Assembly (NCBI GenBank): GCA_026936335.1
Contig: JAPMXV010000055.1
Coordinates: 186,001-250,000 of the forward strand
DNA: 64,000 bases
From: Mantamonas sphyraenae STR306
Taxonomy: Eukaryota > Protista > CRuMs
Reading direction: 5' to 3'
In this document: piece after piece, positions 18,301 through 40,785 of the stretch
How positions within the stretch are numbered: position 1 is the stretch's first letter
How the letters are laid out: the number at the start of each line of letters is the position of its first letter
Translations under genes and position numbers: made by a program
Notes under the pieces: model-generated
Database searches by the model: none
Seen by the model: only the letters and a program-made list of their open reading frames with translations
Told to the model about the DNA's origin: nothing

Positions 18301-20011
18301 ACGTGCTCTCGCTGCCAGACATCATTGACTATGTGCACACGACGCTGCGCGAGCTGCACAAGCCCACGTCTGTGGAGGCAGTGCTTGTGTTGCGCCGCAC
18401 CATTCTGCAGCAGGCGTTGGTGGAATGGCGGCTGCTGGAACAAGAGGAGCGCGTGGCCGCCCTGTCCATGGCCGAATCGTCGTCCACCGCAAGCGGTATG
18501 GACAGTGCCACGGAAAGCGGCAGCGAAAGCGGACACGGCAGCAGCGGCAAGGCGTCGCACCACAGGCAACAGGGCGGGACGTTGCGACCGTCAGAGTCTG
18601 CAGCCTCGTCGTCGTCGTCGTCGTCATCATCCTCCTCGTCCACGTCGGCTAATCACACACAGCTGATTGACCACATCACGAGTGTGGAGCTGCTGGCCAA
18701 GGATGTGACGATGCAGCTGCAGGGGTCGCGTCAGAGGCATGCGGCAGCGGCGGCGAGGTGTCGTCGATGATGCAAGGGACGGCGTACGACGTGGAGGAAC
18801 AGATGCGCAGGATGGGCCGTTCGGTGCCGTCGCTGGCGATGCTGGGCACGCAGCATAGCTTGCGTACACACCTGCTGCGTTTCAGTGCCGTCATGGGACA
18901 ATTGCGGTCGCAGGTACAGTGGACGGCGCATCCGCTGGATCGCAAGTCGGCGGCGTACAGCAGCCTGCAGGCAGGCGCAGAGGCAGAGGACGACGATGCG
19001 ATGGAAGGGGTCGATGGGGAAGAGGACGGCGCTGTGGTGTTGCGTGTGCTGCTGCGCACCATCCGGCTGATTGACCACCGTGCCAAGATGTTGGATGCTC
19101 TTTACGAAACCGACGTGTTGTCGACCATCTACTACGCGCAGGCGCGTGTGGCCAACAAGCGCACGCAGCTGAACATGGAAATCGGGTCGTTCACTCATTT
19201 TGTGGGCCAGGAGAATCCGGAGGCGGTGGCGTTGGACGACGCATGGAACGAGCTGAGCAATCGCCGCCTGGCCATTTCCGAGTTTGAGGCGTCGCTGGCG
19301 TCCTTCGACTTCAACTCGGTGGCCGGCGTGAAGCATCTGCTGAAGCCGAGTGGCATTTCGATGTTGAAAAAGGCAATGCGAGTGCAGCAGGTGGAGAAGA
19401 ACCTGATCATGGCGGGCGTGTATGTGAACCAGATGATGGTGGATCCGCTTATGCGCACCAAGCTGTTCATCGAGGACGTGGAAGCCACGGGCTACGAAAC
19501 GTTCATCACATTGTTTCCGTTTGAGGACTTTGCGCAGTTGACGTCGGGTGCACTGAGCACGAACCGCAAGGCACGGCTGGACGCTTTGCAGCGCATCCGT
19601 CGCACGCAGCTCAAGTTTCTGCAGGAGCACTTTTTCTCTGTGATGGACACAAGGCTCGGGTGCGCAAGAGTGTCCTGAACCACTACCAGGAGCACAGTGT
19701 GGGCATCCTGCAACGATCGAGCGAGGTGTCGCGTCGTCTACTGGACCTGAAGCTGCACTGTGTGGACATGTACACGAGCGACGTGCTGGACGTCGTGCGA
19801 CGGGAGCTGTTGCGCGTGCAAGCGGAGCACGCATACAAGCAGATCCGGCACAAGATGGCCATGGTGCCAGACACGGGCGTGGACGAACGCATTTTTCTCA
19901 TGGACCACGATGAGTTTGAGGCGTATGCTGCCGCCAGTATACAGGTGGACAAGATGGGCCAGTTGGTGGGCGGCGTGGGCGACCTTGGCAGCGGATCGGG
20001 AGAGGCAGGGG

Positions 20012-20045
<34 letters not shown>

Positions 20046-23000
20046 AACGTCTTCAGAAAAGACACTGGGTGCATCTGTGATGGACCGGGGTGCGGCCGAG
20101 GTGGAGGTGCGCAGTGTGCTGACGTCGGACGGAGGGAGTGTGATGAATGCGTTCTACGTGCCGATGGCACACACGCTGGTGGGCAGCACGCCCGGGGATT
20201 CGATGGCGTCGCAGACGCGTGCGATGGGCTACCTGGCAACGATGTCGTTTGCGCTGAGCGAACTGCTGACGCTTGCGATTCTGAACGTGAAGCTGTCGCA
20301 CGCGGTGGTGGACGTGCGCGGGTCGAACCTGGCCCTGCGCGACGTGCCGCTGGAGTTTGCCAAGCTGAAGGCGGAACTGAAGAATCTGAACAACACGAGC
20401 AACCCACAGGAGATGTGTGAATACCTGCTGGAGAAGCGTGTGCTGATGTTTCGCAAGACGGTGTTGGTGCTGCACGAGCTGTGGCGTCAGCTGATGGACG
20501 ACGGCAGCGCGCAGGCGGCGGTGGTGCATGCAGAGATCCGGGATCTGCTGCGTGGCCAGCAGTACGAGAACGTGCACATGGTGGACATGGCGGTGGCAGA
20601 TGTGCGCGACCCGGTGGGGTTGTTTGCCAATCTGCACGCGTTGCGTCAGACGGGCCCGTTTGCAGGTGCGTTGCCGCTGCGCAACTACGACAACCAACTG
20701 AGCATGTGCCTGTCGCAACTCAACCAGGCGAATCTGAACTATGTGCACACGCACATGATGTCGCTGGACTTGAACGTCGACGATCTGTTTGCGGCGCACG
20801 TGGTGTACCCGAGCAGCCAGCCACACGACGCCATGGACCTCGAGCGTGCCCTGGTGGACAACATCCTGGTGAGTCGCCACCTGACCCAGTTGTACCTGTG
20901 TGCACGGCTGGGCGAGCGGAACCTTGCCGATCCCGAGGTGTATGCGCGTGCGCGTGCGCTGTACCGTGGCGTGATTTGGATGCCGACGGTGGAACGGCTG
21001 TGGAACGACGAGGTGATTCCCACCGCAGACATGGAAACGCTCAAAGGCGAGGGCAACCTGCGCGACCCCGAGTTCCAGAGCGACAAGGTGATGCAGTTGC
21101 CGTGGCGTCTGCGCGAAGAGGCTCTGCTGAACTCGGTCACGCGACAGCTGGACCTTTTGCTCATGCAGAGGAGCATCGAGTCGCTGGAGCAGTTCCGCGC
21201 GCGGCTGGTGGACGAGATGCACTTTGACTACGAGACGGCGACGGGCAAGGAGAGGAGCGGGAGCAGTGTGGGCCAGATTGGCGTGGATGCGTACCTGGAC
21301 AAGGTGGCGTTCCTGCAACGGTTTGCAGAGGAGCTGCTGGAGCGTGCCGTGGAGACGCGTGGCGAGTCGGGCCAGCGCATGTACATGTTGGATGAGGAGC
21401 ACGTGAGTGGGGCGCTGCAAATGCTGTCCAGCGACCTGTACGAGTACGGCGAGGGCCGGCTGCGTGTGGAGAGGCAGCAGCACGGGGCAGAGGTGGCAGA
21501 GCTGCAGCGACGTCTGTACGTGGCGGAGCAGACGCAGGCGCACTACGCACGGCAGCTGGCAAAGCAAAAGGAGCAGGAGGGGGTGCGAGTGGAGGTGGAA
21601 GTGGCGGACCGTGGCCTGCAGCTGATCTTTGAGGTGCATCGGATGAACCGGGAGCTGTTTCACATGAAGAAGGAGATGGAGCGGCAGGAGCGTGTGGTGC
21701 GTGAAAAGGTGCGTGCTGAGTACGAGGACCTTGTGCGGGAGCTGAACTCGCAGCTGGTGAGCATGAAGGCGAACTTTACGGAGTATCGCAACGAACTGCA
21801 CGAGGAGATGCTGCTCAAGGTGTTCAAGAGCAAGCAGGAGGCGTTGAAAAAGCTTGTGGAACAACCGTTTGTGCCGATTGAGCTGAAGAGAGGCCTGATG
21901 AAGACGAAGCGTGCGGACGAGGAGATCCAAAACCTGAAGCAGAGCAACGGGGAGCTGCAACGAGTGATTCTGAAGCTGCGCACGTTTATGCGGCTGAAGG
22001 ACATCGGGCTGCGACGATGGCACGAGAAGCAGGTGTCACAGCTGACGAGCAGCAGGGACAAGACGGAGGAGCAGCTGTGGGGCCAGCGGGAAATGCACTC
22101 GGCCAAGGAGAAGCTGCTGCGTTCGCAACTGGCAACGGCGATGCACGCGCTGGCAAACGCAGAGCGGGAGGTGGAGAGCCTGCGACGGGAGGTGGGCATG
22201 CAGCAGTTCAAGAAGAAGCAGCTTGTGCGAACCAAGGTGAAGCAATCGACGGAATTGATGGAGCTGGAGACAAAGATTGCCAAGTTTGAAAAGTACCAGC
22301 ATGTGAACGTGGACCGGATGCTGGGAGACCTGCAGAAGAAGGACGCGGAGATCAGCAAGCTGCGTTCACAGGCCAACTCGCTGCGGAGCATCCTGGAGGG
22401 TCGCAGCACGTCGTCGCTGTCGCGTCCGATGACGGCAGGGTCTGCACGGAGCATGGAAAACACACAGAAGCGATTGGAGCGGGCGCTGTCGCACGAACGG
22501 CGGATCAAAATGGAGGCGTTTGCGAAGCTGGACGAGCTGCGTGACCAGATCAGTGCATGGGAGATGCGCGATCAGGAGGTGGACGCGGAGTTTGGGTCGC
22601 ATGCGGTGATGTGGCAGCGCAACTACGACGAGATCAACAACCACCTACAGCTGGTGCTTCACGAGAACGAACTGCTACGCAAGACGGTGCACGAGCTGGG
22701 CGTGGAGGATCCTACGGAGGGCGGATTTGGAGCAGGAAGCAGCAGTGGAGGAGGCGGGTTGGAGACTGCGTTTGGGCTTGCGTACGCACCTCCCAGGCCC
22801 GGGAGTGTGGCGTCGGATAGTGGTGTGTACCGTCGTGGAGGCGGGAGTGCGGGAGGGAGCGGAAGTGGAGGTGGGAGGAAGATGCGGATTAGCAGTGCGC
22901 GATCGAGCGGAGGTGGGAGACGTGGTGGAGGGATTGGAAGTGGGAGCGGCAGTGGGATGGGCAGGACGCCAAGGAGGATTGATCAGAGGCCTGTGAGGCC

Positions 23001-23217
23001 GATGAGTGCGCCAGGCGGAGGGGGCGGAGGTGGAGGTGGAGGAGGTGGAGGTGGTGGTGGTGGGAGAAAGGGAAGCAGTAGCAGCCGGTTGGCGCGAGGC
23101 AAGGGAGTGACGAGGCCAATGAGTGGGAGGAGCAGCGCAAGTAGCAGTGGGGGTGGGAGGAAGAGTGTGGGCAAGGCCAAACTTGTGTTTGATCCGCTGG
23201 GCACGAGTGGCTGGTGA
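15307..23217 (+). CDS. Giant coiled-coil protein, CCDC162/DUF4549-like (~2,570 aa); intron 15853-16048; three apparent frameshifts (~16925-16957, 18722-18725, 19631-19635)
   Basis: Five consecutive + strand ORFs join through one GT-AG intron and single-base slips. The N-terminal region (DYRQERRQLL...RYLTRWNTHC..LEYEDACVRVRRI..VVHPRDARIYLRHLI..VQWLP) and the C-terminal region (ADRGLQLIFEV..VREKVRAEYEDLV..FTEYR) resemble CCDC162 as I recall it; no search was run. Confidence 0.65.
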
Positions 23218-24026
23218 GCAGGTGGGACGAGATGAATGCATTTCCAACACACAGATCCGCGTCTATTGGAGTTGTCAAGAGAGGCAGAAGGATCCCATAG
23301 GATGCCCTGCCAACAAGAGCGGGAAAATGTGGTCGCGTGCGTCGAACCATCTCGATCCGACAAATTGACAAACGACAACTTTTTGACATGCGACATGCAT
23401 GGCTCTGTTCCCAGGGTCAGCTGGGGGGTGAAGGCGGGCGACGTGCTGAGGATCAGCGCAAGTGGGTGTCGGTGGGGCTGGCGAATTCTCAGCAGCCTGC
23501 ACAAGTTCACGTGAGCTTTCTTCTCTTCTTCCCTCCCCACTCGAGCCGGATCGTCCCATTCATCTCTCGCTGTGCAGCTATGCACGAAGCCCACAGACGG
23601 AATGTTGGGACAGCTCCTGGGTGACGTGGAAAGTGAAGACGGAGACGCAAGGGATGAAAGTTGGCAGTGTGGAGGCGTTGCAACGACAAGTACGGCTAGA
23701 GACGGTCAATGCCACGTGCACGTACCGCCTTTCGCGTTGGGAACATGTGCAAACAAGCACAAACAACCGCTTGGATCGATACGATTGCCGACGGGTCGCA
23801 CGATGCATGTGGTGCCCGCTTGAGATTGTTTGGCACCTGAAGAGTGGCATGCAGTACACGGCTTCCACGGCACAATACTGTGTCCCAACTTGTGTGCGAG
23901 GATCAAAAGAACCATAAAACACCTTGAGACACCCAACATCGATGCATTCCATTTACACGGTGGAGAAAGACGAAGTGTGGCGATTTTGCCTTTTTCGCCC
24001 CGAACCGTCCATTCTTTCTCGACATC

Positions 24027-27000
24027 ATGTTCAGTGCCAAATTTGTCTTTGTTGCACTCTTCATGACATGGTCGAGTTTTCTCATTTCGACGACCTACGC
24101 AAACACCACAGGCGTGATCCATCAGGAGATTGCTGTGGATGAGAGCGTGGATGATGATGTGCTTTTCTCTGATGCGCCGTATTCGCTTTCCACGAGCGGC
24201 GTAAACGGCGCCGAGGCGTTTGGCAGCGAAGCCGCCGCCGCTGTGGCCGCCAATGCCGCGCACGCAAGTCATGGACCCAAAATGATTGTGCGCACGATCA
24301 CCAAGGGAGCAGTGGTCACCCATGAGCTGTTCACCAAAGTCAACCCGGAGCTTCACGACCAAGCCAAGCTGCTGGTGCGACCCATCAACCAGCTGCGTGC
24401 GAACGGTGTTCTCAGCATGACCAGCTCGCACATGTCCCGTGTCATGGGCCACGCCATCAGCAAGGCCGGTGCGTCCGGTTCGAGCTCGTTGGAAATGCAG
24501 CACGACGAGGCTCAGGAACTCCTCGACACCCCGGCTCCGAACGAGGACGTGGAGGAGCGCCAGAAGGCCGTGGACACACATGCGACCCAGATCCGAGCTG
24601 TCAAAGCGCACGATTTGATCAGCGATCCAGATGCGATTGCAGATGAAGCCGGTGGGTGCGCGAGCTGCCGTTTCTTCCGACCCTTCCTTTTCGTTTCCCT
24701 CCCGCGTTTTCGTGCAAAAGCTACATTTTTCGTCGTGTTTGCGGGTCCCACTTCCTCCACCCCCCCCCCTTTGCGCACGAATGTCAATCGATGCTGACCC
24801 ACGGCGAGAGCAGGTATCGTGGAGGTGTCATGTGCATTCATGAGGGGCCACCCGGGCCTGCGCAAGGGATCGATGTTCTCGCTGAGTTCCGGTCTGTTCA
24901 AGCTCCTGCACGTGTCGGCACCGCGTGGCGCCGCTGCGTACTCTCCCTCCACTCAGGTGGAGTGTGGCGATGCGCAGACGGCCGCTAAGCGCGTGTACCA
25001 CCTGATTGTGCACCGTGCAGATATCGAGGACGCCGTAAAGGAGGGTACCGTCCGCATCGAGCTGACAGGCATTGACCCCACCGTGACCAACGAATACCCT
25101 GCGGTCCAGGAAGGAAACAAGGCCACTCCTGCAGACGCACGCCTCTTTGTTGGACGCAACCGTGAGGCAGCGATTGAGCGGGCCAAGCAGGATGTGGCCA
25201 AGAAGCAACTGGAGGAGAAGGAGGCTGATGAAGGCGACGACGAGGACGTCGACGATGCCCTGGCCACCCTCACCGACGGCAACAGCAACAGTGGAGTTGT
25301 TGAATTCTTTGAAAGCGCATGGGACATTGCCAAGAAGGCCTGGAATGCACTGGGCGGCAACATCGACGGCAAAATGGACCTTGGTCCCAAGCTGAAGCTT
25401 GTCATCCACGACACCCAGTTGCTGAATGTCAAGGTGAAGAAGGTGGACGTGTTGGTGATCGCTGAAGAGGTCAAGGTCACGGTGCACCCGCGCCTGATCC
25501 TGTCCTTCAAGCTGTCCAACTACAACCTGGAGCGTGCTGCAGTGAAGCAGATCGGCTCTCTGGACGTCTTTGCTCGTCTGTGGGTCCAAGTGTCCCGTGG
25601 CATCGAAATCAAGGATGACAAGGACCTGTTCAACGAAAAGCTGGCCTCGCCCGAGCTGAAGATCGGTCCGATCAAGCTGTCGGTTGTGATCCGTGCCCGC
25701 GCCACCGTGGGTGTGGATCTGGCCGTGCGTGCTGGCATCCAGACGCGTCTCAAGGGCTCTCTGGCCCTGCTGGTGTCCGGTGGCGTGGAGTTCAACAACG
25801 GCAAGTGGGGCGTTGGCGTCAAGATCAAGCTCAACCACAACCTGGAGCCGCCCGAGAAGCCGCAGCCGTGTGGCAGCGCACGTGCAGAGGCACGTGCCCA
25901 CGTGCACCTCAGCTTCAAGGCTTACGATGATGCTGGCCCATGGGCCGCGCTGGAGCCGTACCTTCGCATCGAGTTCAAGCCGCAGGGCATGTCTCCCTGC
26001 GTGGCACCCAACCCGACCTCCCTGTCCGACCTCAAGAAGATCCCCGAATTCAAGGCCAAGGTGGAGGCAGCCATGGGTGACGTTACGGGCCAGCTGCCCA
26101 AGCTCGAAGCCGAAGTGCGTGCCAAGCTGGAGGCGGAGTTGGGCAAGCTGAAGGGCATCGGAGTGGACCTGCTGACGAGTCTTGCGGGCATGTCCATCGA
26201 CGACTGGATGGCCAAGCTGAAGGGAGTGCGCCTGGGCACCCTGGGCAGGATGAAGGGCGTCAAGGCCGATGCCGATCTCAAGGGACCCCAGCTGGAGGCC
26301 TTTGAGATCATTCTGCGTACGGTGAAGCAACTGTTCAACCTGGTTGCCCGCCTGGGCAACCCCAAGATCAAGGATCTGGACTTTGACTGGAGCCTGGAGA
26401 AGAAGGAGACAGACACGGGCGATCCCGAAGACAAGAACCGACTGATTGTCTTTGGCGGCATCCGCTCGCGTGCGGGCTTCTCCATCAAGATTGTGGACTG
26501 GACGCTGGCGGAGGAGGATTGGGATCTGGTCAACACCGAGGGCGAGATCCTTGTGTTGGAGTTCAAGCTACCCTTTTTCACCGAGGAGGAGAAGAAGCGC
26601 ATTCTGGTCAAACGACGAAAGTACGAGTACCAGAAGGTGGCCGTGCAGACGCAAGCACGCACCAAGGCCCACGCCGAAAAGACGGAAGCCATGTTGCGTG
26701 ACAAGGCTCGCCGTGCCAAGCTGATCGAACAAGCAGTGCGCAGTTTGCACAGGGCCGGCCAGACCCTCGGCCGTGCAGCCATTGCAGCCGTCAAGGGCCA
26801 CTATCGCGCCCTGATCCAAGCCATGCAGGCCGTGGGCCAGAAGTTCATCAAGTGGCTGGCCATTCAGGTCAAGTATGCTGGTGAGCAGAACGAAGAGCTC
26901 ACGCGTGCTCTCTCCGAAGAGTACAAACTGTACCACAAGCACGGTCACTTCTACAACGATGTTCAGGACCGACGCAAGTCCCTGTTGGCTGCTGACGAGG

Positions 27001-30000
27001 ATGACGAGGAGGAGGAGGAGGAGGATGTCGATGATGTGGAGGAGGAGGAGGAGGACGACGACGACGTCGACGAGATGTCCACTTCGTCCATCTACGACGC
27101 CGACTACGACCTGCTGACCAACCCCGCAGACAAAAAGGCCCAGGGCAACGGTGCTTCGAAGCAGAAGAAGGAGTACAGCTTGGATGTGTTGTTCGCGCAG
27201 CTGCGTACCGATGTTGCGCACTACAAGAGCTTCGTTTCTCGCGGAGTGAGCGCGATCCAGAAGAGGCTCAACAGCGAAAAGAAGAACTTGAACGGCAACT
27301 CGTCGTGGCACGTCACGTATCGTAGCCATTTCAAGCTCAATGTCCAGTATATGACACGGGATCTGGAATCAGCGAAGAAGCTGCAGAAACTGTGGACCGC
27401 GGACGATGATGTGGATGATCTGCTGATCTCTGCGCTGCAGGCGTACTACAACCAGCTGCGCGCGCGTCAGGTGCACAACAACAACCCTCATCAGGTGCAT
27501 GCGTACGAAACCATGGTGAACATCCTGGACACCTTGCGTGTGCCGGCAAAGTTCCAAGTGGACGCGGTGATCAGCCAGCTGCATCGCCTGTGGACCGACA
27601 TGCGCCTGCAAACCGCAAGCTGGAAGCGACCGACAAAGTCGCGCGATGTGTTTACCGTGTGGCTGCGCAAGGAGGTGAAGGAACACGCACGTGTGGCAGC
27701 CGAGGCCAAGAAACACGCCAAGTCTGCGTACTGGAAACACACCGCCAAGGCTGCGTGGTTGCGCGTTGTCTACGTGGTCGGCACATGGTTCCATGAAATT
27801 GCCAAGGAGAACGCACCGTACTATTTCGCGCAGCACGCAACCATGGTGCACACCGCAATGGCAGGCTATGCCAAGACGGGTGCCAGCGCCTACTTTGTAC
27901 AGGCACGCTTCCATCGCATGTACAGCATGCAGCAATCCCTGCGTTTGTTCCACACCTATTGGGTGTACCCGTCGACCAAGACCAACAACGTCGTCAAAAA
28001 CCTGGCTGAACTGGATTTGTTCACCGTGACCCGCTCGCGTGCCAATGAGCTCGCGCTGGCCACCCTGCTCCACGCATGGAAGCAGATGGAAGGCCCTTCG
28101 CTGTTGTACCGCCAGAAGAACTGCTATGGGTGCGCCAAGGACGCAGAGTACTATCGATACCTGCACCGCAACCAAGCCTTTTTGCCCTGCGCTGATGCAA
28201 GGTTCCATGCGGTGCAGCAGACCCCAGGCACCAAGGCGGCTGCTCTGGCGCATGCACGCGCCACGTTCATCTGCTTCCGCTACCGGTACTACGACAAGGG
28301 CACCAACTACCAGGCACGCACAAAGCTACGCAGCGAGCTCGATGCGTACGAGTTCCAGGTCAGTGAGCTGGAAGGCAAGATGCGCGCAGGCTCGTTTCAG
28401 GCAGCCTTGGACAAACACCTGAATCGCTTCTGCGGCAGTAGCTGCTCCGTGGTGCGCCAGAAGCGTGCCGAGATGCAATCGCTGAAAGCCAAGATGCCCA
28501 CGCTGCGCAAGCTGGCATCCCGTTCCAAGGAGGACCTGTACCGTCTCCGAGCTGCCGAAGCACGCCTAAAGCTGTACAAGTACACCATGTACGACGAGGG
28601 TGGCATGAACACGATCTACAACTACGCGCATGTGCCGAAGTACCTGAACATGTACAGGATGAAGTACTACGAACAGTTGGAACTGCTGCAGAAGACGGGT
28701 CGTGCCGAGTACGACTTGCGCGCCAAGATGTATCAGTACAAATGGCGAGAGTATTTTGCCCAATCAGTCATCTCATATGACGGACTCCAGTATGGTGAAC
28801 AATTCTACGCCGCCCAAATCAGCCAGATTGTACGCGAGGCCAAGGCGCGTGCAGAAGAACTGAAGAAGAAGGCAGTCGTGGCACGTGATGAGGTGACGAC
28901 GATGACGGCAGCCCTCAAGGCTGCACAGGCCAAGTGGACCGCAGAGGCGTCGAAGGAGGACAAACTGTACCGCAACGCACAGGCCAAGAAGCTGTGGTCG
29001 GTGGCAGAGCAACACAAGCAGCTGCGCAACCGTGCACGCCTGCTGGCGACCATGCAGAAGAAGATCCCAGGCTCGTTTGCACACAAAGCGCTGCTGTACG
29101 AGGCCAACTCATGCAAGCACGCAGCCAAGGTGGCACACACAACAGCGATCAAGGACAAGCTGCCCACTATGCACATGAAGCGTACGTACCTGGACGCGGT
29201 CATCCGCGTGGAAAAGGCCAGCAGCACCATCTACGCACTCAAGCTGAAGCTGTTGCTGCAGACCAACACGCAGGAGAGGTCATACCTGGCCCAACAGATT
29301 GCCAAGAACCAAAAGGTGGTGGACAAGGGTTTGGGCTTCTCGGATCCGGTCAAGGAAAAGGAGACGCGTGTCCAGGCGGAGCACGCAGGTGCACGCCAGC
29401 GGTACTACACCCCGATTGCCAAGGCATCCAAGTACAACGCGGCCATGGCCAGGTATTGGACGCACAAACAGATGGAGTTCAACCTCATGGTGCGCTACTA
29501 CCGTGAGACGTGGCGTCATGATCTGCGTGCGTACGCAGAGGTGTACCACACGCGAGCCCTGGCCAACATGGCCCAGGCCGAGCTGACCAAGGCCAAGAAG
29601 AACGAAGTCAAGTATTTGACGCTTTCGGTGGAATACCACAACACCCTCGCCGCCGCTCGCTTTGCCTACAAGGTGTACATTGAGAGCAACCACACCGACC
29701 GTGCCCAGTACCGCCAGTTCGAGGCCCTGGGCAAGAAGGCAGCTTCCGTGCGTGCAGCCATGAACAAAGCCAACCCGTACTATCACGCGGGTGAGATTGA
29801 GAAGTACCGCAAGATGGCCGCCAAGGTCTCTGCCGAAGCCAACGCTGTGCGCAAACTGCAAAACCGAAAGCCAACGCTTGCGAGACACTACAAGCTTGCA
29901 GAGTTGGATTCTCGCCGGGAGTTTTACCATTCGTACTACCTGTTCTATCATGACACGCGCAAGCAGTGGCTGCCGTTCGAAGCCAAGTACTACGACAATG

Positions 30001-32402
30001 GCTCCGAGTCGTACAAGCGTGCGTTCCAGATCACCGACGGCAAGGCCAAGGGCACGCTGGACGGCAAGCAGCACCTGTACCTGAAGGAAGAACAGGAGGC
30101 ATACATGGAAATGGGCAAAGCGTATCGCCAGCTGGCAGAAGCGATGCAGGTCAAGGATGCGGTGAACCGACGCGGAGCCGTGCAGGCCGCGTCGAATCGC
30201 GTCCGCGATGCACACAGCAGGTTGATGGAGGCCATCGGACGCGATGAGCAGCGCTATAGCCAGATGATGATTGCCACGGCCAACTACCAGAAGAAGTACG
30301 CAGAGACCAAGCGTGCGTTGCTGCACGCCACGGACGCCAAGAGAAAGCGTGTGCTGAACCATCGTGTGAAGTACTTTTATAATCTGATCATGCAGACACG
30401 CACGATGCAGGACTTTTATCGCCACATGCGTCGCACATGGTTGCGCGAAAAGGCACAGGCCCACTATCACATTGCGCGCGAGCACGAATTCCTGGCGGAT
30501 GAAATCGAACATGGGAAAAAGTGGCTGCATCTGCGTGCGCTGGAGAACAAGTGGCTGGCTGTGATGTTCCAGCGCATGGCAAAGTCGTCGGAGACGGGCA
30601 AGGCACCGGTGGGGGTGAAGGATGCGCAACACCGTGCGCAGCACTACGCGGCACAGGCCGGAGCGCATCGCAACCAACCCACGGGTGCAGAGGCACAACT
30701 GGAAGACATGCGCAGGCACATGACCACCCTTCTCAACCGTCTGCACAGGGCCATGCACAATCTCAACACGCTGTCCGAGAACGCAAGGCGCAAGGCAGCC
30801 GCAGCCATTCTGGCGGCTGGCAAGATGCAGGATCGCGGCTCCCACGAGGCAAATGATGCCGAACGGGCGCGCGTGACAGCTCTTGAGAACGCCAGCAAGG
30901 CGGCCAACGCAGAGGTGGTCAAGGTGCACAAGGAGATTGAGGACATCAAGCGTCAGATGAAGATTCTGCACACGCGCATGGAGCAGCACATGAAGAAGGT
31001 GCTTGCGGCGTCTCACGAGCGTGGCAAGGAGCACCTGAAGATTGCCAAGGCGGAGGCGGTGCGTGCTGTGGAGCGTGCGCTGGCGGACGGACCGGTGCAT
31101 GTGATCCGGGAGCTGGTCAAGCTGGCCAAACAGGTGCGTGGCATGGCTCACGTCCTGCTGGCATCGCTGAGTCACAAGACCAAGCTGTCGTCCGAGGCAC
31201 GCAAGAAGCTGGAGAGCAAGCTCAAGGGCTACGTGATCTGGGCGACGAATGTGGTGCACAAAGACTATGAAGTGGCCAAGGAGATCCGCCTGATGACGGC
31301 CAAGTACGGCATGAAGGCAGACGAGTACATTTCCAAGGACGTGCGTCCCAAGAGCTACTACGAAAAGGAGAACGCCTCGGAAGTGCAGCGCCTCACGCGC
31401 CTTCTCCTGGTGCAGCAGAAGGAGCAGAAGCTGCGCCATGAGGCAGCCAAGCGCAAGCGTGACCTGGAGCGTGCCAAGCGTGAAAAGGCAGAACGTGAGG
31501 CGCGCCAGGCGTACCTGAAGAAGAGCTACGAGGCACGCATGAAGGCGGCACGTGCCAAACGGGAGGCCGAGCAGAAGATCAGGCGCAAGGAGGCTGCACT
31601 GAAACGGGCTCAGGAGGCACTGGAGCGCAAGAAGAAGCAGGAAGCGTTCCTGAAGAAGCGCGAGGCGGAAGCAAAGGCAAAGGCAAAGGCAAAGGCCATT
31701 GCAGAGCAGAAGAAGCGTTTTGCTCAGCAACAGGCGGCCCAAAAGATCAAGGATGCCGCCAAGCGCAAGGCTGCCGAAGCCAAGCTCAAGGCTGAACTCA
31801 AGAAACAACAGGCGGAGAGGTTTGCCAAGATTGCTCGTCAGGACCAGCTGCGTGCCGAAGCCAAGGCCAAGTTGGCCAAGGCGGCTAAGGCTGCTGCTAA
31901 GAAGGCTGCTGCTAAGAAGGCTGCTGCAAAGAAGGCTGCTGCTAAGAAGGCTGCTGCAAAGAAGGCTGCTGCAAAGAAGGCTGCTGCTAAGAAGGCTGCT
32001 GCTAAGAAGGCTGCTGCAAAGAAGGCTGCTGCCAAGAAGGCTGCTGCCAAGAAGGCTGCTGCAAAGAAGGCTGCTGCTGAAAAGGCAAAGAAGGTCAAGA
32101 AGGCCAAGAAGGCCAAGAAGGCAAAGAAAGCCAAGAAGGCAAGAAGGCAAAGAAAGCCAAGAAGGCAAAGAAAGCCAAGAAGGCCAAGAAAGCCAAGAAG
32201 GCCAAGAAAGCCAAGAAGGTCAAAGAAAGCCAAGAAGGCAAAGAAGGCAGGCAGATGCTCGCGAACTGGTTGCGTCTGTCGCCAACAGCGCAACGGGAGC
32301 TTCACATGCCGCTGTCCCGTGGGCAAATCGTCCAAGAAGCATCCTCAATGCGTGTGCCGACAGCAACGCAGGGGCAACTTTGCCTGCACGTGCAGGGTGT
32401 GA
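24027..32402 (+). CDS. Giant secreted protein (~2,737 aa): signal peptide, beta-rich domain, long helical region, KKAAA/KKA tail, Cys-rich C-terminus; intron 24652-24813
   Basis: Signal peptide MFSAKFVFVALFMTWSSFLISTTYA. The intron G|GTGGGT...GCTGAC...CAG|GT joins in phase to the 2,527-aa ORF. Strong coding-like codon bias. Confidence 0.85.
31899..32248 (+). repeat. Coding tandem repeats: 12 x 15-bp AAGAAGGCTGCTGC(T/A/C) (KKAAA) at 31899-32078, then 9-bp AAGAA(G/A)GC(C/A) (KKA) units
   Basis: The array is directly visible. Variation is mostly at synonymous third positions. Confidence 0.95.
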
Positions 32403-37900: not shown

Positions 37901-40785
37901 ATGTGAGTTCACCTCCTTCCTTTGCCTTCCCTGCTCCTGTGTCTTGTCCTCTCTCCTTACACGTACCTTGCCCCCCCCCCCCCACCCACCACCACACACC
38001 ACACACCTGTACCTACAGGGACTGGGAAGACGATTGGGAGAGCCTCGAGTTTGGTGCGGAAGATGCGGCCAGCACCAAGGCAGCCAGTGCCAAGCAGGTG
38101 GGTCGCAATGTAAAGTCATTCCTGGCCAGCCACAACGTGAATGTGGACCGGGCCGACCTGATCCGCAAGAAACGGCGGTGTCGCAATCTGTTCCTGCAGA
38201 AGCGCCGCCTTCACCTGGACGCCGTCTACCACTCCACGTCCGTGGGTCAGGTCAACGCCATCGACAAGTTCCCGGAATTGGTGGCCCAGTATGTCACCGC
38301 AGAGGAGTTCAAGGAGATCACAAAGGCCACTGGGACCAAGGCGTTCATTCGCAAGTGTGGCGGCGTGGAAGTGGGCAAGCGGGCCAACAATGCGGACCAG
38401 AATCGCCACCCCATCCCACCGTACGACAGCACACGTGTCATCCTACGTGTCCTCCCCGATCCACCCCTCACCGCCGACGAGTCCAGCGCGTCTGTGTCCA
38501 CCAGCTCTGCATTGGTAAGCTGTGCGACGGGCCTGGCCCCTTTGCTTCGCTCGCGGGAAACGGGAGAAAAACCCCAGCGGGCTCCGGCTCTTGTGTCCGG
38601 CCCTGCGGTCCCTACATCCACGCATCGCCCGTGCATGTGGCCACAGTGTGTGGCCAGCGAGAGGATGCAACCTGTGGGAGGGGTCCGAAGAGTGTAGAGA
38701 GGCGTGTGCGTGTGGCAGAGGCAAGTGTTTTTTCCCGGCGGCAACCGGAGCGTGCAACTCACGAATTCGGGTGGCATCACACACACACACGCACAGACGT
38801 CGGGCCCCAGGTTGTTGGCGGGCGACGGGAAGAAGTGGCAACTGGATGGAGAGGTGGAAGGTGGGTTGAATGAGGAGTGGGGCGTGGCAATGGCATCCCA
38901 TGGGAACAAGGTCAGCAGTAGCAGCAGCAGCAGCAGCATGGGCAGCCGGAGCGAAAAGAGCGTGCTGAGTAGCGGGAGCAGCACAAAGAGCACAGGAGGC
39001 AGTAGCACGGGAGGCATGGCACAGGACGACGAAGACACAGACACAGTGTACACAGACATGACGGACGAGACCATCGACTCTGTGGATGCATCGTTCATGC
39101 CGCTGGAGGGGACGCGAGACAATGGAGCGGATGCAGACTACATCAACGCCAGCTACATCACCAGCTACGACAAAGGGTTCAACAGGTACATTGCCACTCA
39201 GGCACCCCTGCCACACACCATCGGACAGTTCTGGCACATGGTGTATCAGGACAAGAGCAAGATGTTTGTGTCGCTGGTCGATGTCTCGGAGGACCAGTGC
39301 ACCCAGTTCTGGCCAAGCAACGTCGGTGACTCGGAATACTACCAACCCATCATGGTCACCTTTGTCGACGAGGTCCGTGTCCATGAACGCATCACAAAGC
39401 GACGCTTTCGCATTCGCAAGCGTCCTGCTCCGCAGCAGCGAAACGGCGGCCATTCCGCGGCGGCTTCCGCCGGAGAGTACGTTGTCCTGGACGACCTCGG
39501 TGACATGTCCGCACGCATGGACAGCATGCAATTGGGCGGGTTGGGCGGGTTGGGCGGGTTGGAAGATGGCATGGCCTTTGGTGGAGGCGCTGGTGGCGAC
39601 GACGGCGACGATGGCTTTGGTTCCCTGGAGTTTGAGGTTGGCCAGGACGGCTCGGCGACCAACAACGAGGATTTGCAGGACACATTCCTCACCTTTGACG
39701 ACGACGGCGAAGACTTTGCGTTTGAGATTCCGTTGGATGGGTTGGATGGGGGCGACGGAGGTGCAGGGGCAGAGGCAGGGGCAGAGACAGAGACAGAGGA
39801 GGAGGAGGAGGAGGGTCAGCAGGGCTGGGGTGAACCCATCGAGGTGATCCAGTGGCACTACCACCGATGGTCGGATATGACGGCACCGTCAGATGTGGAG
39901 TCGCTGTTGGCGCTGATTGCATTATTGGACCAGGAGGAAATGTGTCTGTACGACGACCAGTTGCCGGCAGACGACGAAGGCCACGCCAGCCGACGCGAGT
40001 CGGAGGTGATGGAACTGGAGGCACAGCACCAGCTTGTGGACAAGCTGGTGGACAAGCTGGTGGATGCCAAGTGGAAGCCACAGGGATGGGCAGACGCAGC
40101 AGCATCAGCAGGAGTAGCAGAAGCAGTAGCACACAAAGAGGAGGGACGAAGGAGACCCAGCAGCGACGACTATGACGACAACGACAAAGACGAGGCATCA
40201 TCGCTCACCACCACCCTTGGAGGAGGAGGAGGAGCAGGAGGTGACGGCACTGAGGAGCAGGACAGGAGGAAACAAGGGGCGCAACAACAAACACCACTGG
40301 AGGACGAAACGGAGGAATTGGCCAAGGTGGGGGGAACAAAGGATGGACAGCACAACAAGATGAAAGGCGAGCAGCAACTGGACGGCGATCACCAAACACC
40401 ACAGCACGAACAGCAGCAACTGCTGCAACAACAACAACAACAGCAACAGCAACAGCAACAGCAACAACAGGACAATGAGGAGGATGAGGATGCAGAGACA
40501 GGACCGGGGTTCAAACGCAACGATGACAACATCCCACCCATTGTCTGCCACTGCAGCGCTGGGGTGGGGCGTGCAGGCACATTCATTGCTGCACATTTGG
40601 CATGTAACTACCTGCGCGACTACCACAGTGTCACGGGCAGGCACCAGGACAGCATCAACATGGCCCAGCTTGTCTACGAACTCCGCTGCCAGAGGCCCTT
40701 TATGGTGTACAGGGAAACCCAATATTCATCCCTGTACGACATTGTGTACAATTACAGCGTGTTTCTGGCAGAGAGTGATCCATGA
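37901..40785 (+). CDS. Classical protein tyrosine phosphatase with large low-complexity inserts; introns 37903-38018 (splits the ATG) and 38515-38796
   Basis: Motifs NRHPIPPYDSTRVIL, DYINASYI, YIATQAPLPHTIGQFWHMV, CTQFWP, WHYHRWSD, the P-loop HCSAGVGRAGTF and LRCQRPFMV..QY. Confidence 0.9.

Follow-up and report, generated by a model that had tools for sequence, protein, structure and literature searches.

The 64,000-nucleotide (nt) stretch of the Mantamonas sphyraenae STR306 genome analysed here (contig JAPMXV010000055.1:186,001-250,000, referred to as the window; coordinates without a contig or locus label are window-relative) contains at 24027-32402, on the forward strand, a gene which the comparisons described below show to be a real two-exon eukaryotic gene with a predicted product of ~2,736 residues (viz. 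the window gene and the window protein). The N-terminal part of this protein, its head, is shared by a family of giant proteins in Mantamonas and links this family to thousands of uncharacterised proteins, which are prokaryotic where named, and the head was most likely acquired from a prokaryote. Neither the head nor the middle region nor the architecture as a whole can be placed in a characterised family, whether from sequence or from predicted structure, the closest being a domain of unknown function (DUF) that is matched below threshold and by some relatives only. The family would account for ~90 kb of the 25-Mb genome (an estimate from 15 genes of ~6 kb each), and it has no counterpart among curated domains or solved folds. 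The CRuMs, to which Mantamonas, a small gliding bacterivorous flagellate, belongs, stand near the base of Amorphea, and to our knowledge their cell biology is almost unexplored; among protists, giant secreted proteins of orphan status are not unusual. We tentatively favour, at somewhat less than an even probability, the reading that the window protein is a secreted binder of polyanions, whose targets would probably be the surfaces of bacterial prey.

The preliminary description of this DNA regarded 24027-32402 as one gene. Two exons are indeed joined across this span, but it is not a single open frame. The open reading frames (ORFs) listed for it are 24027-24797 (256 aa, beginning with ATG) and 24819-32402 (2,527 aa), which are in the same frame and are separated by a TGA at 24795-24797. 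This in-frame TGA falls within a 162-nt GT-AG intron at 24652-24813 (GTGGGT...CTGAC...GCAG, C/T-rich, with a branch-like CTGAC site and a poly-C run), the excision of which splits one Gly codon and keeps the reading frame. Further, in several paralogues the sequences homologous to exon 1 and exon 2 lie in one continuous ORF at a spacing of ~71-73 residues, and the same spacing is seen in proteins derived from cDNA of M. plastica, so that the predicted splice is well supported, independently, by these relatives. The 2,527-codon open frame is far beyond chance expectation, and because the flanking genes are eukaryotic and the window gene carries an intron, it does not represent bacterial contamination. 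The long intergenic gap of ~810 bp pointed out earlier is present as 809 bp between the stop at 23217 and the ATG at 24027; its sequence occurs once in the genome, and an Rfam scan of the window, inclusive of this gap, gave no match. The features of the locus are as follows.

23218-24026, no strand assigned: upstream non-coding gap of 809 bp between the stop of ORF 19660-23217 and ATG 24027, presumed to hold the promoter and 5' untranslated region
24027-24651, forward: exon 1, 208 codons and the first base of the split Gly codon (ATG 24027, GT donor 24652)
24027-24101, forward: predicted signal peptide MFSAKFVFVALFMTWSSFLISTTYA, read from the translation
24652-24813, forward: intron, 162 nt, with in-frame TGA 24795-24797 (GT-AG signals; contiguous flanks in relatives)
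24814-32402, forward: exon 2, 2,528 codons and stop, an uninterrupted frame
24816-25100, forward: small N domain of the head, exon-2 residues 1-95, motif ADIEDAVKEG, conserved in at least 8 paralogues
25212-25256, forward: first acidic linker EEKEADEGDDEDVDD, from the translation
25296-26576, forward: beta module of the head, exon-2 residues 161-587 (alignment A1, AlphaFold2 model, profile search)
25869-26000, forward: span between the co-varying Cys pair C352 (25869-25871) and C395 (25998-26000), a putative disulfide
26010-26435, forward: helical insert of ~140 residues that splits the beta module (alignment, AlphaFold2 helices)
26994-27074, forward: acidic hinge, 27 residues of D/E/V, from the translation
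27213-31415, forward: middle region, basic and enriched in A, K, Y, H and M, presumably helical (exon-2 residues 800-2200; composition, periodicity)
31416-31898, forward: highly charged K/A/E/R tract before the repeats, net +22 to +28 per 100 residues, with a copy at the C10 locus
31899-32078, forward: (KKAAA)x12 array (repeat analysis)
32088-32248, forward: KKA array, a 9-nt AAGAAGGCN array with a frame-shifted RRQRKP/RRPRKP block (32142-32219)
32271-32315 and 32349-32393 (span 32271-32393), forward: two CxC-x9-CxC motifs, CVCRQQRNGSFTCRC and CVCRQQRRGNFACTC, from the translation, with the same pair at C10

A second intron of this window, at 37903-38019, resembles that of the window gene in its GTG.GT donor, C/T-rich body, run of at least 10 C and CAG acceptor, and this style of intron (GTG.GT, C-rich, CAG) may be general in this genome.

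The genome searched for paralogues comprised 25,061,354 bp in 78 contigs (~59-60 % GC); the published FALCON assembly of M. sphyraenae has 25.06 Mb, 78 contigs and 59.19 % GC (PMC10492846). Here and in the other sequence searches the two exons were used as separate queries (24027-24650 and 24816-32399, both on the forward strand). A six-frame search with the head gave 26 matches in at least 15 genes, all within open frames of 900-2,800 codons, so the paralogue search that had been proposed for this gene finds that it is not a singleton. The members share a pre-region, the small N domain (paralogue consensus ...GSVFSIPSGLYKVT...YHL..NADLEDAVKDATV...) and a beta module of ~290 residues. In exon 1 of the window gene, residues 79-177 are conserved in the paralogues and in the M. 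plastica proteins. In alignment A1, which consists of 16 beta-module copies from the M. sphyraenae genome, positions G124, G139, G163, P186, Y210, G214, P215 and G388 are invariant. Most members are net-basic, up to +395, with basic C-terminal ends, and no Pfam domain is found in the paralogues above cut-off, sub-threshold matches to ApoLp-III and Phasin occurring among them. Several of the M. plastica members likewise end in K/R-rich tails, and the members from this species are known from transcripts (EukProt) and are thus expressed.

The paralogue closest to the window gene, at C19:234438-242687 (+), is colinear with it from head to tail, with 46-54 % identity in the head, and these two genes are the only ones in which the module contains the ~140-residue helical insert. 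In the C19 paralogue the frame has to be shifted at four or more points, which lie within the N domain, near 237.0 and 239.6 kb and in the tail; CTCTC/CTCKC motifs of the tail are read in another frame, and the copy is either a pseudogene or affected by assembly indels. At the C10 locus (~286.6 kb, L037:1495-2346 (-)), a 283-codon ORF corresponds to the tail only. Its lead-in, EAFLKKR...AKAKA, and its pair of CxC-x9-CxC motifs are those of the window gene, but its repeat, (AKKAHAKRLA)x13, is different. This ORF and the 3' part of a HECT-like ORF are arranged head-to-head, and it is either a separate gene or a gene fragment.

Outside Mantamonas, the relatives of the head were identified by comparing the A1 profile with 1.84 billion cluster representatives, in which 3,031 proteins matched at E<=1e-3, and for 791 of these E was <=1e-10. 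The five best matches (1e-145 to 1e-75) are from M. plastica, and the next are at ~1e-35. The matches beyond M. plastica are proteins of 250-1,300 residues from metagenomes, and those of prokaryote type match A1 at E 1e-35 to 1e-17 over profile positions ~51-310. The per-protein counts given here are for the best 145 non-Mantamonas proteins of the 3,031 matches, and the source was looked up for 20 listed ones. The three relatives that carry an organism name are prokaryotic, viz. a "hypothetical protein" of Streptomyces rimosus and proteins from metagenome-assembled genomes (MAGs) of an FCB-group bacterium and a Candidatus Proteinoplasmatales archaeon. A Met start is seen in 134/145, an N-terminal hydrophobic stretch in 110/145 and a lipobox-like Cys in 51/145, and two relatives that were traced to their contigs lie in bacterial neighbourhoods with genes for type II secretion ATPase and platform proteins, pilin, FG-GAP and MopE. 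The earlier impression that the head resembles uncharacterised bacterial surface proteins is borne out by these matches. The core motifs of the module are GPVPV, Y..AGP....(E)PY and a closing G.(R)G hairpin, and the columns that are invariant in A1 are nearly invariant in A4, the alignment of the head relatives. Among 110 relatives that were scanned, the C-terminal domains found behind this shared head are diverse, viz. FGE-sulfatase (11), Fib_succ_major (10), CarboxypepD_reg (10), fn3 (10) and PKD (9), and also SpaA, SdrD_B, beta-propellers, MopE, RCC1, VWA and Lcl_C. This diversity indicates a general layout consisting of a constant head and a variable C-terminal payload, and the Mantamonas family repeats this layout with payloads of its own.

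The features common to the Mantamonas proteins and to this unnamed, mostly prokaryotic family include, besides the layout, a module of long beta strands with the motifs GPVPV, Y..AGP....EPY and G.RG..G and, probably, ahead of it a small N domain in which a motif like A-x-L-E-D-A-[IV]-K-x-G occurs. The Mantamonas proteins differ in being 2-5 times longer, in having the pre-region, acidic linkers and a conserved Cys pair, and, for the window gene, in the 140-residue helical insert in the module; further, their C-terminal parts are long basic regions without a Pfam domain, whereas those of the relatives contain fn3, PKD, VWA or FGE-sulfatase. For the N domain, homology is suggestive, but not conclusive: the N domain of the relatives ends in ...T..ASLEDAVKEG..., which aligns with HRADIEDAVKEG of the window protein (hhalign probability 66 %, E 5.7e-5, over only 28 columns), and a comparison of a hidden Markov model with sequences gave no significant match. 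The head family appears to be distantly related to Pfam DUF7223 (PF23865, gathering cut-off 27 bits), which is matched below cut-off by 18/124 relatives (best E 1.1e-6); the window protein has no match to it at E<=1, and the genome has none; our literature search found no paper mentioning DUF7223. That no family could be recognised for the architecture agrees with scans against Pfam, NCBIfam, PHROGs and PADLOC, in which neither the window protein nor the paralogues or relatives gave a whole-architecture or head family above cut-off (the sub-threshold matches included Baculo_PEP_C), and with sequence and profile searches of the PDB, which gave nothing. A word-index protein search with head residues 1-710 found no match among 8,000 candidates, a result that is uninformative as known relatives were missed too; the same kind of search with A4 gave 4 matches only. 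The ESM Atlas searched by features gave low scores or no usable match, and a search for related loci with the compact relative P0006 against the genome_contigs set gave nothing.

With regard to the origin of the head, a tree was inferred from 133 modules and 246 columns (quick IQ-TREE, LG+C20), with relatives from the best 150 of the 3,031 matches; it is unrooted and several of its rows have deviant composition. All 22 Mantamonas modules lie on one side of a branch with an SH-like approximate likelihood ratio (SH-aLRT) of 98, and within this group the modules of M. sphyraenae and M. plastica interleave as orthologue pairs. This pattern points to one origin, with the expansion of the family preceding the split of the two species. 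The direction of transfer, from a prokaryote to Mantamonas, is suggested by the distribution, since prokaryote-type sequences make up thousands of cluster representatives and the eukaryotic ones are confined so far to one genus. The gene transfer that had been raised as a possibility is therefore plausible as an ancient event, in view of the homology of the head to prokaryotic secreted proteins and lipoproteins and of the single group formed by the Mantamonas copies. Following the transfer, the Mantamonas copies would have gained an intron (in the window gene) and a Cys pair. The two cysteines, C352 and C395 of exon 2, are both present in 13/16 of the M. sphyraenae modules and both absent in 3/16, and they occur in 0-1 % of the prokaryotic rows. 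Such co-variation is the pattern expected of a disulfide, and it suggests that C352 and C395 are bridged and that the protein passes through the endoplasmic reticulum.

The signal-peptide-like start described previously is present as MFSAKFVFVALFMTWSSFLISTTYA, in which, as judged by eye, a hydrophobic core of 15 residues follows a basic n-region and T-Y-A stands ahead of the likely cut, and the M. plastica relatives begin with clear, similar signal peptides. Due to this predicted signal peptide, those of the M. plastica relatives and the Mantamonas-specific co-varying Cys pair, entry of the window protein into the secretory route is supported. The translation of the window protein shows neither a transmembrane segment nor a hydrophobic anchor signal at the C-terminus. 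Prenylation of the C-terminus at a CaaX box was also considered and was rejected, the last Cys being at position -3 instead of -4 and the protein having a signal peptide.

The beta-rich character of the region noted earlier as such is evident from its hydrophobicity, the period-2 power of which is 57 as against <=11 at helical periods. Two AlphaFold2 (AF2) models were made of the head. That of the window module, with the 16 paralogues as alignment, has a predicted local distance difference test (pLDDT) value of 69.8 and a predicted template-modelling (pTM) score of 0.44, and it shows very long beta hairpins, a helix at the N-terminus and the insert as a helical bundle, with helices at module residues 244-354. 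The second model, for residues 27-392 of P0006 with a 124-row alignment, is of higher confidence (pLDDT 89.4, pTM 0.80); in it a small beta domain leads into a meander in which ~14 strands, each of ~15-25 residues, run up and down. The check by AlphaFold and Foldseek that was proposed in the preliminary description gave no structural match above noise for either model. Foldseek against the PDB gave at best E 0.015 and a template-modelling (TM) score of 0.12, to microsomal triglyceride transfer protein (MTP), and against BFVD E 0.007 and TM 0.12; VIA-align against 48,161 chains gave at best Z 6.8, within the stated noise band of 7-8, the result for the window model being dominated by the helical insert, for which the matches are to generic helical bundles only. 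The ESM Atlas searched by shape returned uncharacterised bacterial clusters only (best TM 0.30 by model, 0.50 by match), and the small N domain is weakly like pieces of phage and type VI secretion baseplate hubs (Z 4.5-5.3, within noise). The weak structural rows are to outer-membrane barrels, pore states of MACPF/CDC and gasdermin, MTP, JHBP/Takeout and ApoB, all of which have curved antiparallel sheets, and as far as the models go these rows describe a shape and should not be interpreted as showing membership in any of these groups. A head of the inverse-autotransporter or outer-membrane-barrel kind was rejected, as the barrel matches are at noise level and one member of the family is found in Streptomyces, which has no outer membrane.

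The head shares with the beta pore formers (MACPF/CDC, gasdermin, leukocidin) and with outer-membrane barrels the long antiparallel up-and-down hairpins, and it could on this basis be a membrane-inserting or pore-forming module whose hairpins form or join a beta pore, with the protein acting as a cytolysin against prey membranes. The strands of ~20-40 residues in the models, the enrichment of the weak rows in MACPF/CDC, gasdermin, RCD-1 and leukocidin pore states and outer-membrane barrels, and the cationic amphipathic helices just ahead of the module in several paralogues agree with this explanation. However, we consider it quite unlikely, in that all of the structural scores are at noise (TM <=0.12, Z <=6.8, root-mean-square deviation (rmsd) 4-13 Å), the sequence carries no family signature of MACPF, aerolysin or leukocidin, and the prokaryotic relatives look like modular surface lipoproteins and not like toxins. 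When MACPF/CDC, aerolysin, leukocidin and gasdermin were specifically compared, TM was <=0.12, Z <=5.5 and rmsd 11-25 Å, for a test set at TM >0.5 or Z >8, with no Pfam match.

Hardly probable at all is the related proposal that the curved amphipathic sheet, together with amphipathic helices, wraps a lipid or other hydrophobic ligand in the manner of large lipid transfer, TULIP and apolipoprotein-type proteins. The best Foldseek row is indeed to MTP (VIA Z 5.9, rmsd 6.1 Å); the TULIP-type proteins JHBP and Takeout are at Z ~4, and Takeout, JHBP, Der f 7, P47 and the ApoB beta barrel together at Z 3.3-4; sub-threshold ApoLp-III and phasin matches occur in the paralogues. Every one of these scores is, however, below noise or the curated thresholds, no lipid-transfer family is found by sequence, and the polycationic tail would be left unexplained.

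The part of the protein on which the polyanion-binding reading centres begins after the acidic hinge, from where the net charge is +217 over 1,738 residues. The beta-rich region, the acidic hinge and the KKA repeats of the preliminary description are all present, the hinge being 27 D/E/V residues at 26994-27074. Of its Tyr/His/Lys-rich helical rod, the composition stands (A 13.9, K 9.6, Y 6.3, H 4.4, M 3.4 %; P+G no more than 4.4 %), as does a 3.6-residue periodicity, in keeping with which the middle region is presumed to be helical. The rod shape is conjectural; periodicity and repeat analysis gave no dominant heptad signal and no internal repeat. The sole relative of these ~1,400 residues is the frame-broken C19 paralogue (30-40 % identity). 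Outside the genome, the ESM Atlas by features gave nothing for the middle region, and the word-index protein search was also empty (8,000 candidates scored, uninformative). The number of KKAAA units is exactly 12, as had been counted, at 31899-32078; Tandem Repeats Finder reports period 15, 13.3 copies and 94 % matches. The RRQRKP/RRPRKP block that follows is the 9-nt AAGAAGGCN (KKA) array read out of frame, one A having been lost and the frame returning ~80 nt further on. This array (32137-32222) is strongly basic in both frames, and an assembly error in a homopolymer run may account for the frame excursion. The supposed duplicated Cys knot is to be corrected: the sequence CVCRQQRxGxFxCxC does occur twice, at 32271-32315 and 32349-32393, but it represents CxC-x9-CxC motifs and not a knot. 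These motifs have no PDB or Pfam match, and an EGF identity was rejected, with E 1.3 only.

The K/A-rich, low-complexity polycation is a feature also of the tails of linker histone H1 and of Chlamydia Hc2 (HC2, PF07382). The tail copy at C10 scores 50.5 bits against Pfam HC2 (cut-off 40), and the window protein and its tail give no Linker_histone or HC2 match; the window protein has no winged-helix globular domain and differs further in its signal peptide and Cys motifs. The resemblance is compositional and should not be taken as a sign of common descent. It is in keeping with the explanation that the protein is an intracellular binder of nucleic acid or chromatin whose signal peptide has been misread, or else that the gene is decaying or mis-assembled and without function, as are the broken frames of the nearest paralogue and the -1/+1 frame excursion in the KKA array. 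This explanation is very improbable in view of the hydrophobic signal-like N-terminus common to the relatives, the Mantamonas-specific co-varying Cys pair, the absence of a linker-histone globular domain, and an intact frame of 2,528 codons in which the head motifs are conserved.

A more serious alternative, possible although doubtful, is that the protein is a structural or matrix component, viz. a constituent of a coat outside the cell, of an adhesive used in gliding, of a layer of cysts or scales or of the condensed content of an extrusome-like secretory organelle, in which the polycation would pack with acidic partners and the acidic hinge or pro-regions would neutralise it in transport. 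The giant size, the presence of both acidic and basic blocks and the fast-evolving repeat arrays are explained by it equally well as by polyanion binding, and many net-basic family members with diverse C-terminal ends are also in its favour. Against it, the translation contains no transmembrane or C-terminal anchor signal, the middle region lacks the repeats typical of fibrous matrix proteins, and the word extrusome is absent, by word count only, from the Mantamonas genome paper (PMC10492846).

According to the reading favoured here, of a secreted polyanion binder, a Mantamonas ancestor would have taken the head from a prokaryote and its descendants would later have gained the intron and the disulfide. 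The protein would act outside the cytosol, either at and around the cell surface or inside secretory or food vacuoles, in their lumen. Its head would be, as in the prokaryotic relatives, a constant module for binding or anchoring and the C-terminal part a variable payload, which in the window gene would be a long polycation with an affinity for polyanionic surfaces. For a gliding bacterivore of small size, the prey envelope (lipopolysaccharide, teichoic acids, acidic lipids) is the most economical polyanion target, and the protein would probably serve to capture, clump or kill the bacteria. As to the two Arg-rich CxC-x9-CxC motifs, these may form disulfide-laddered beta hairpins. Protegrin- and tachyplesin-type peptides are cationic beta hairpins of this build, with ~4 residues between their CxC pairs; the window tail shares with them the Arg-rich character and the two CxC pairs, which have the Cys register expected of a two-disulfide hairpin and could bridge C1-C4 and C2-C3 around an antiparallel hairpin with an N-G/G-N turn. 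It differs in having a 9-residue loop, in standing at the end of a 2,700-residue protein and in showing no sequence or structure match.

Several points weigh against this reading. For this particular member the splice is predicted and expression is presumed, and the signal peptide of the window protein was read by eye. No M. plastica orthologue of the window gene was seen, and the sole full-length paralogue is that at C19 with its broken frames. As no fold match stands above noise, a binding role for the head is based only on analogy with the modular layout of the relatives. The Lys residues of the KKAAA array would point in all directions of a helix, so that the array is not amphipathic, which suits the binding of polyanions but not an action like that of classical membrane-lytic peptides. 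The loop of the CxC-x9-CxC motifs is longer than those of the hairpin peptides described so far, and metal binding is a possible alternative role for these motifs. Lastly, nothing ties the protein to prey in preference to the cell's own matrix.

If both the transfer and an action on prey are true, a bacterivore would have turned a bacterial surface module on bacteria, or to the needs of its own surface. A wider form of the polyanion-binding reading, which we hold to be unlikely, is that the prokaryotic surface head was expanded into a giant secreted arsenal, in which an undescribed beta fold would dock on or insert into bacterial envelopes and interchangeable payloads would capture or kill the prey. 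A deep-branching eukaryote would then possess a novel type of antibacterial or prey-handling system, represented here by a 1,700-residue polycation with hairpin-like tips, and a starting point would be gained for the function of ~3,000 prokaryotic proteins that are as yet uncharacterised. The analysis also yields two testable objects, viz. a confidently modelled and apparently undescribed beta domain, and a natural polycation that combines H1-like repeats with paired CxC motifs.

Some further observations were made on other members of the family. A Cys-rich end, W[ST]KCP.GYA[LM]HA[VF]...GAGGLN[ND]L...CC, is common to the ORFs on C47, C49 and C32 and to the M. plastica protein P0003; it is reminiscent of dermatopontin-type motifs and has no Pfam match. 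The members at C47:28335-34865 and C49:374319-380855 (2,177 and 2,179 codons) are near-identical where compared, and those at C75:114088-121779 (2,564 codons) and C55:406898-414352 (2,485 codons; C55b) form a highly similar pair; both pairs could be recent duplications or uncollapsed haplotypes. The C75 and C55b members, as well as P0001 of M. plastica, each carry two beta modules.

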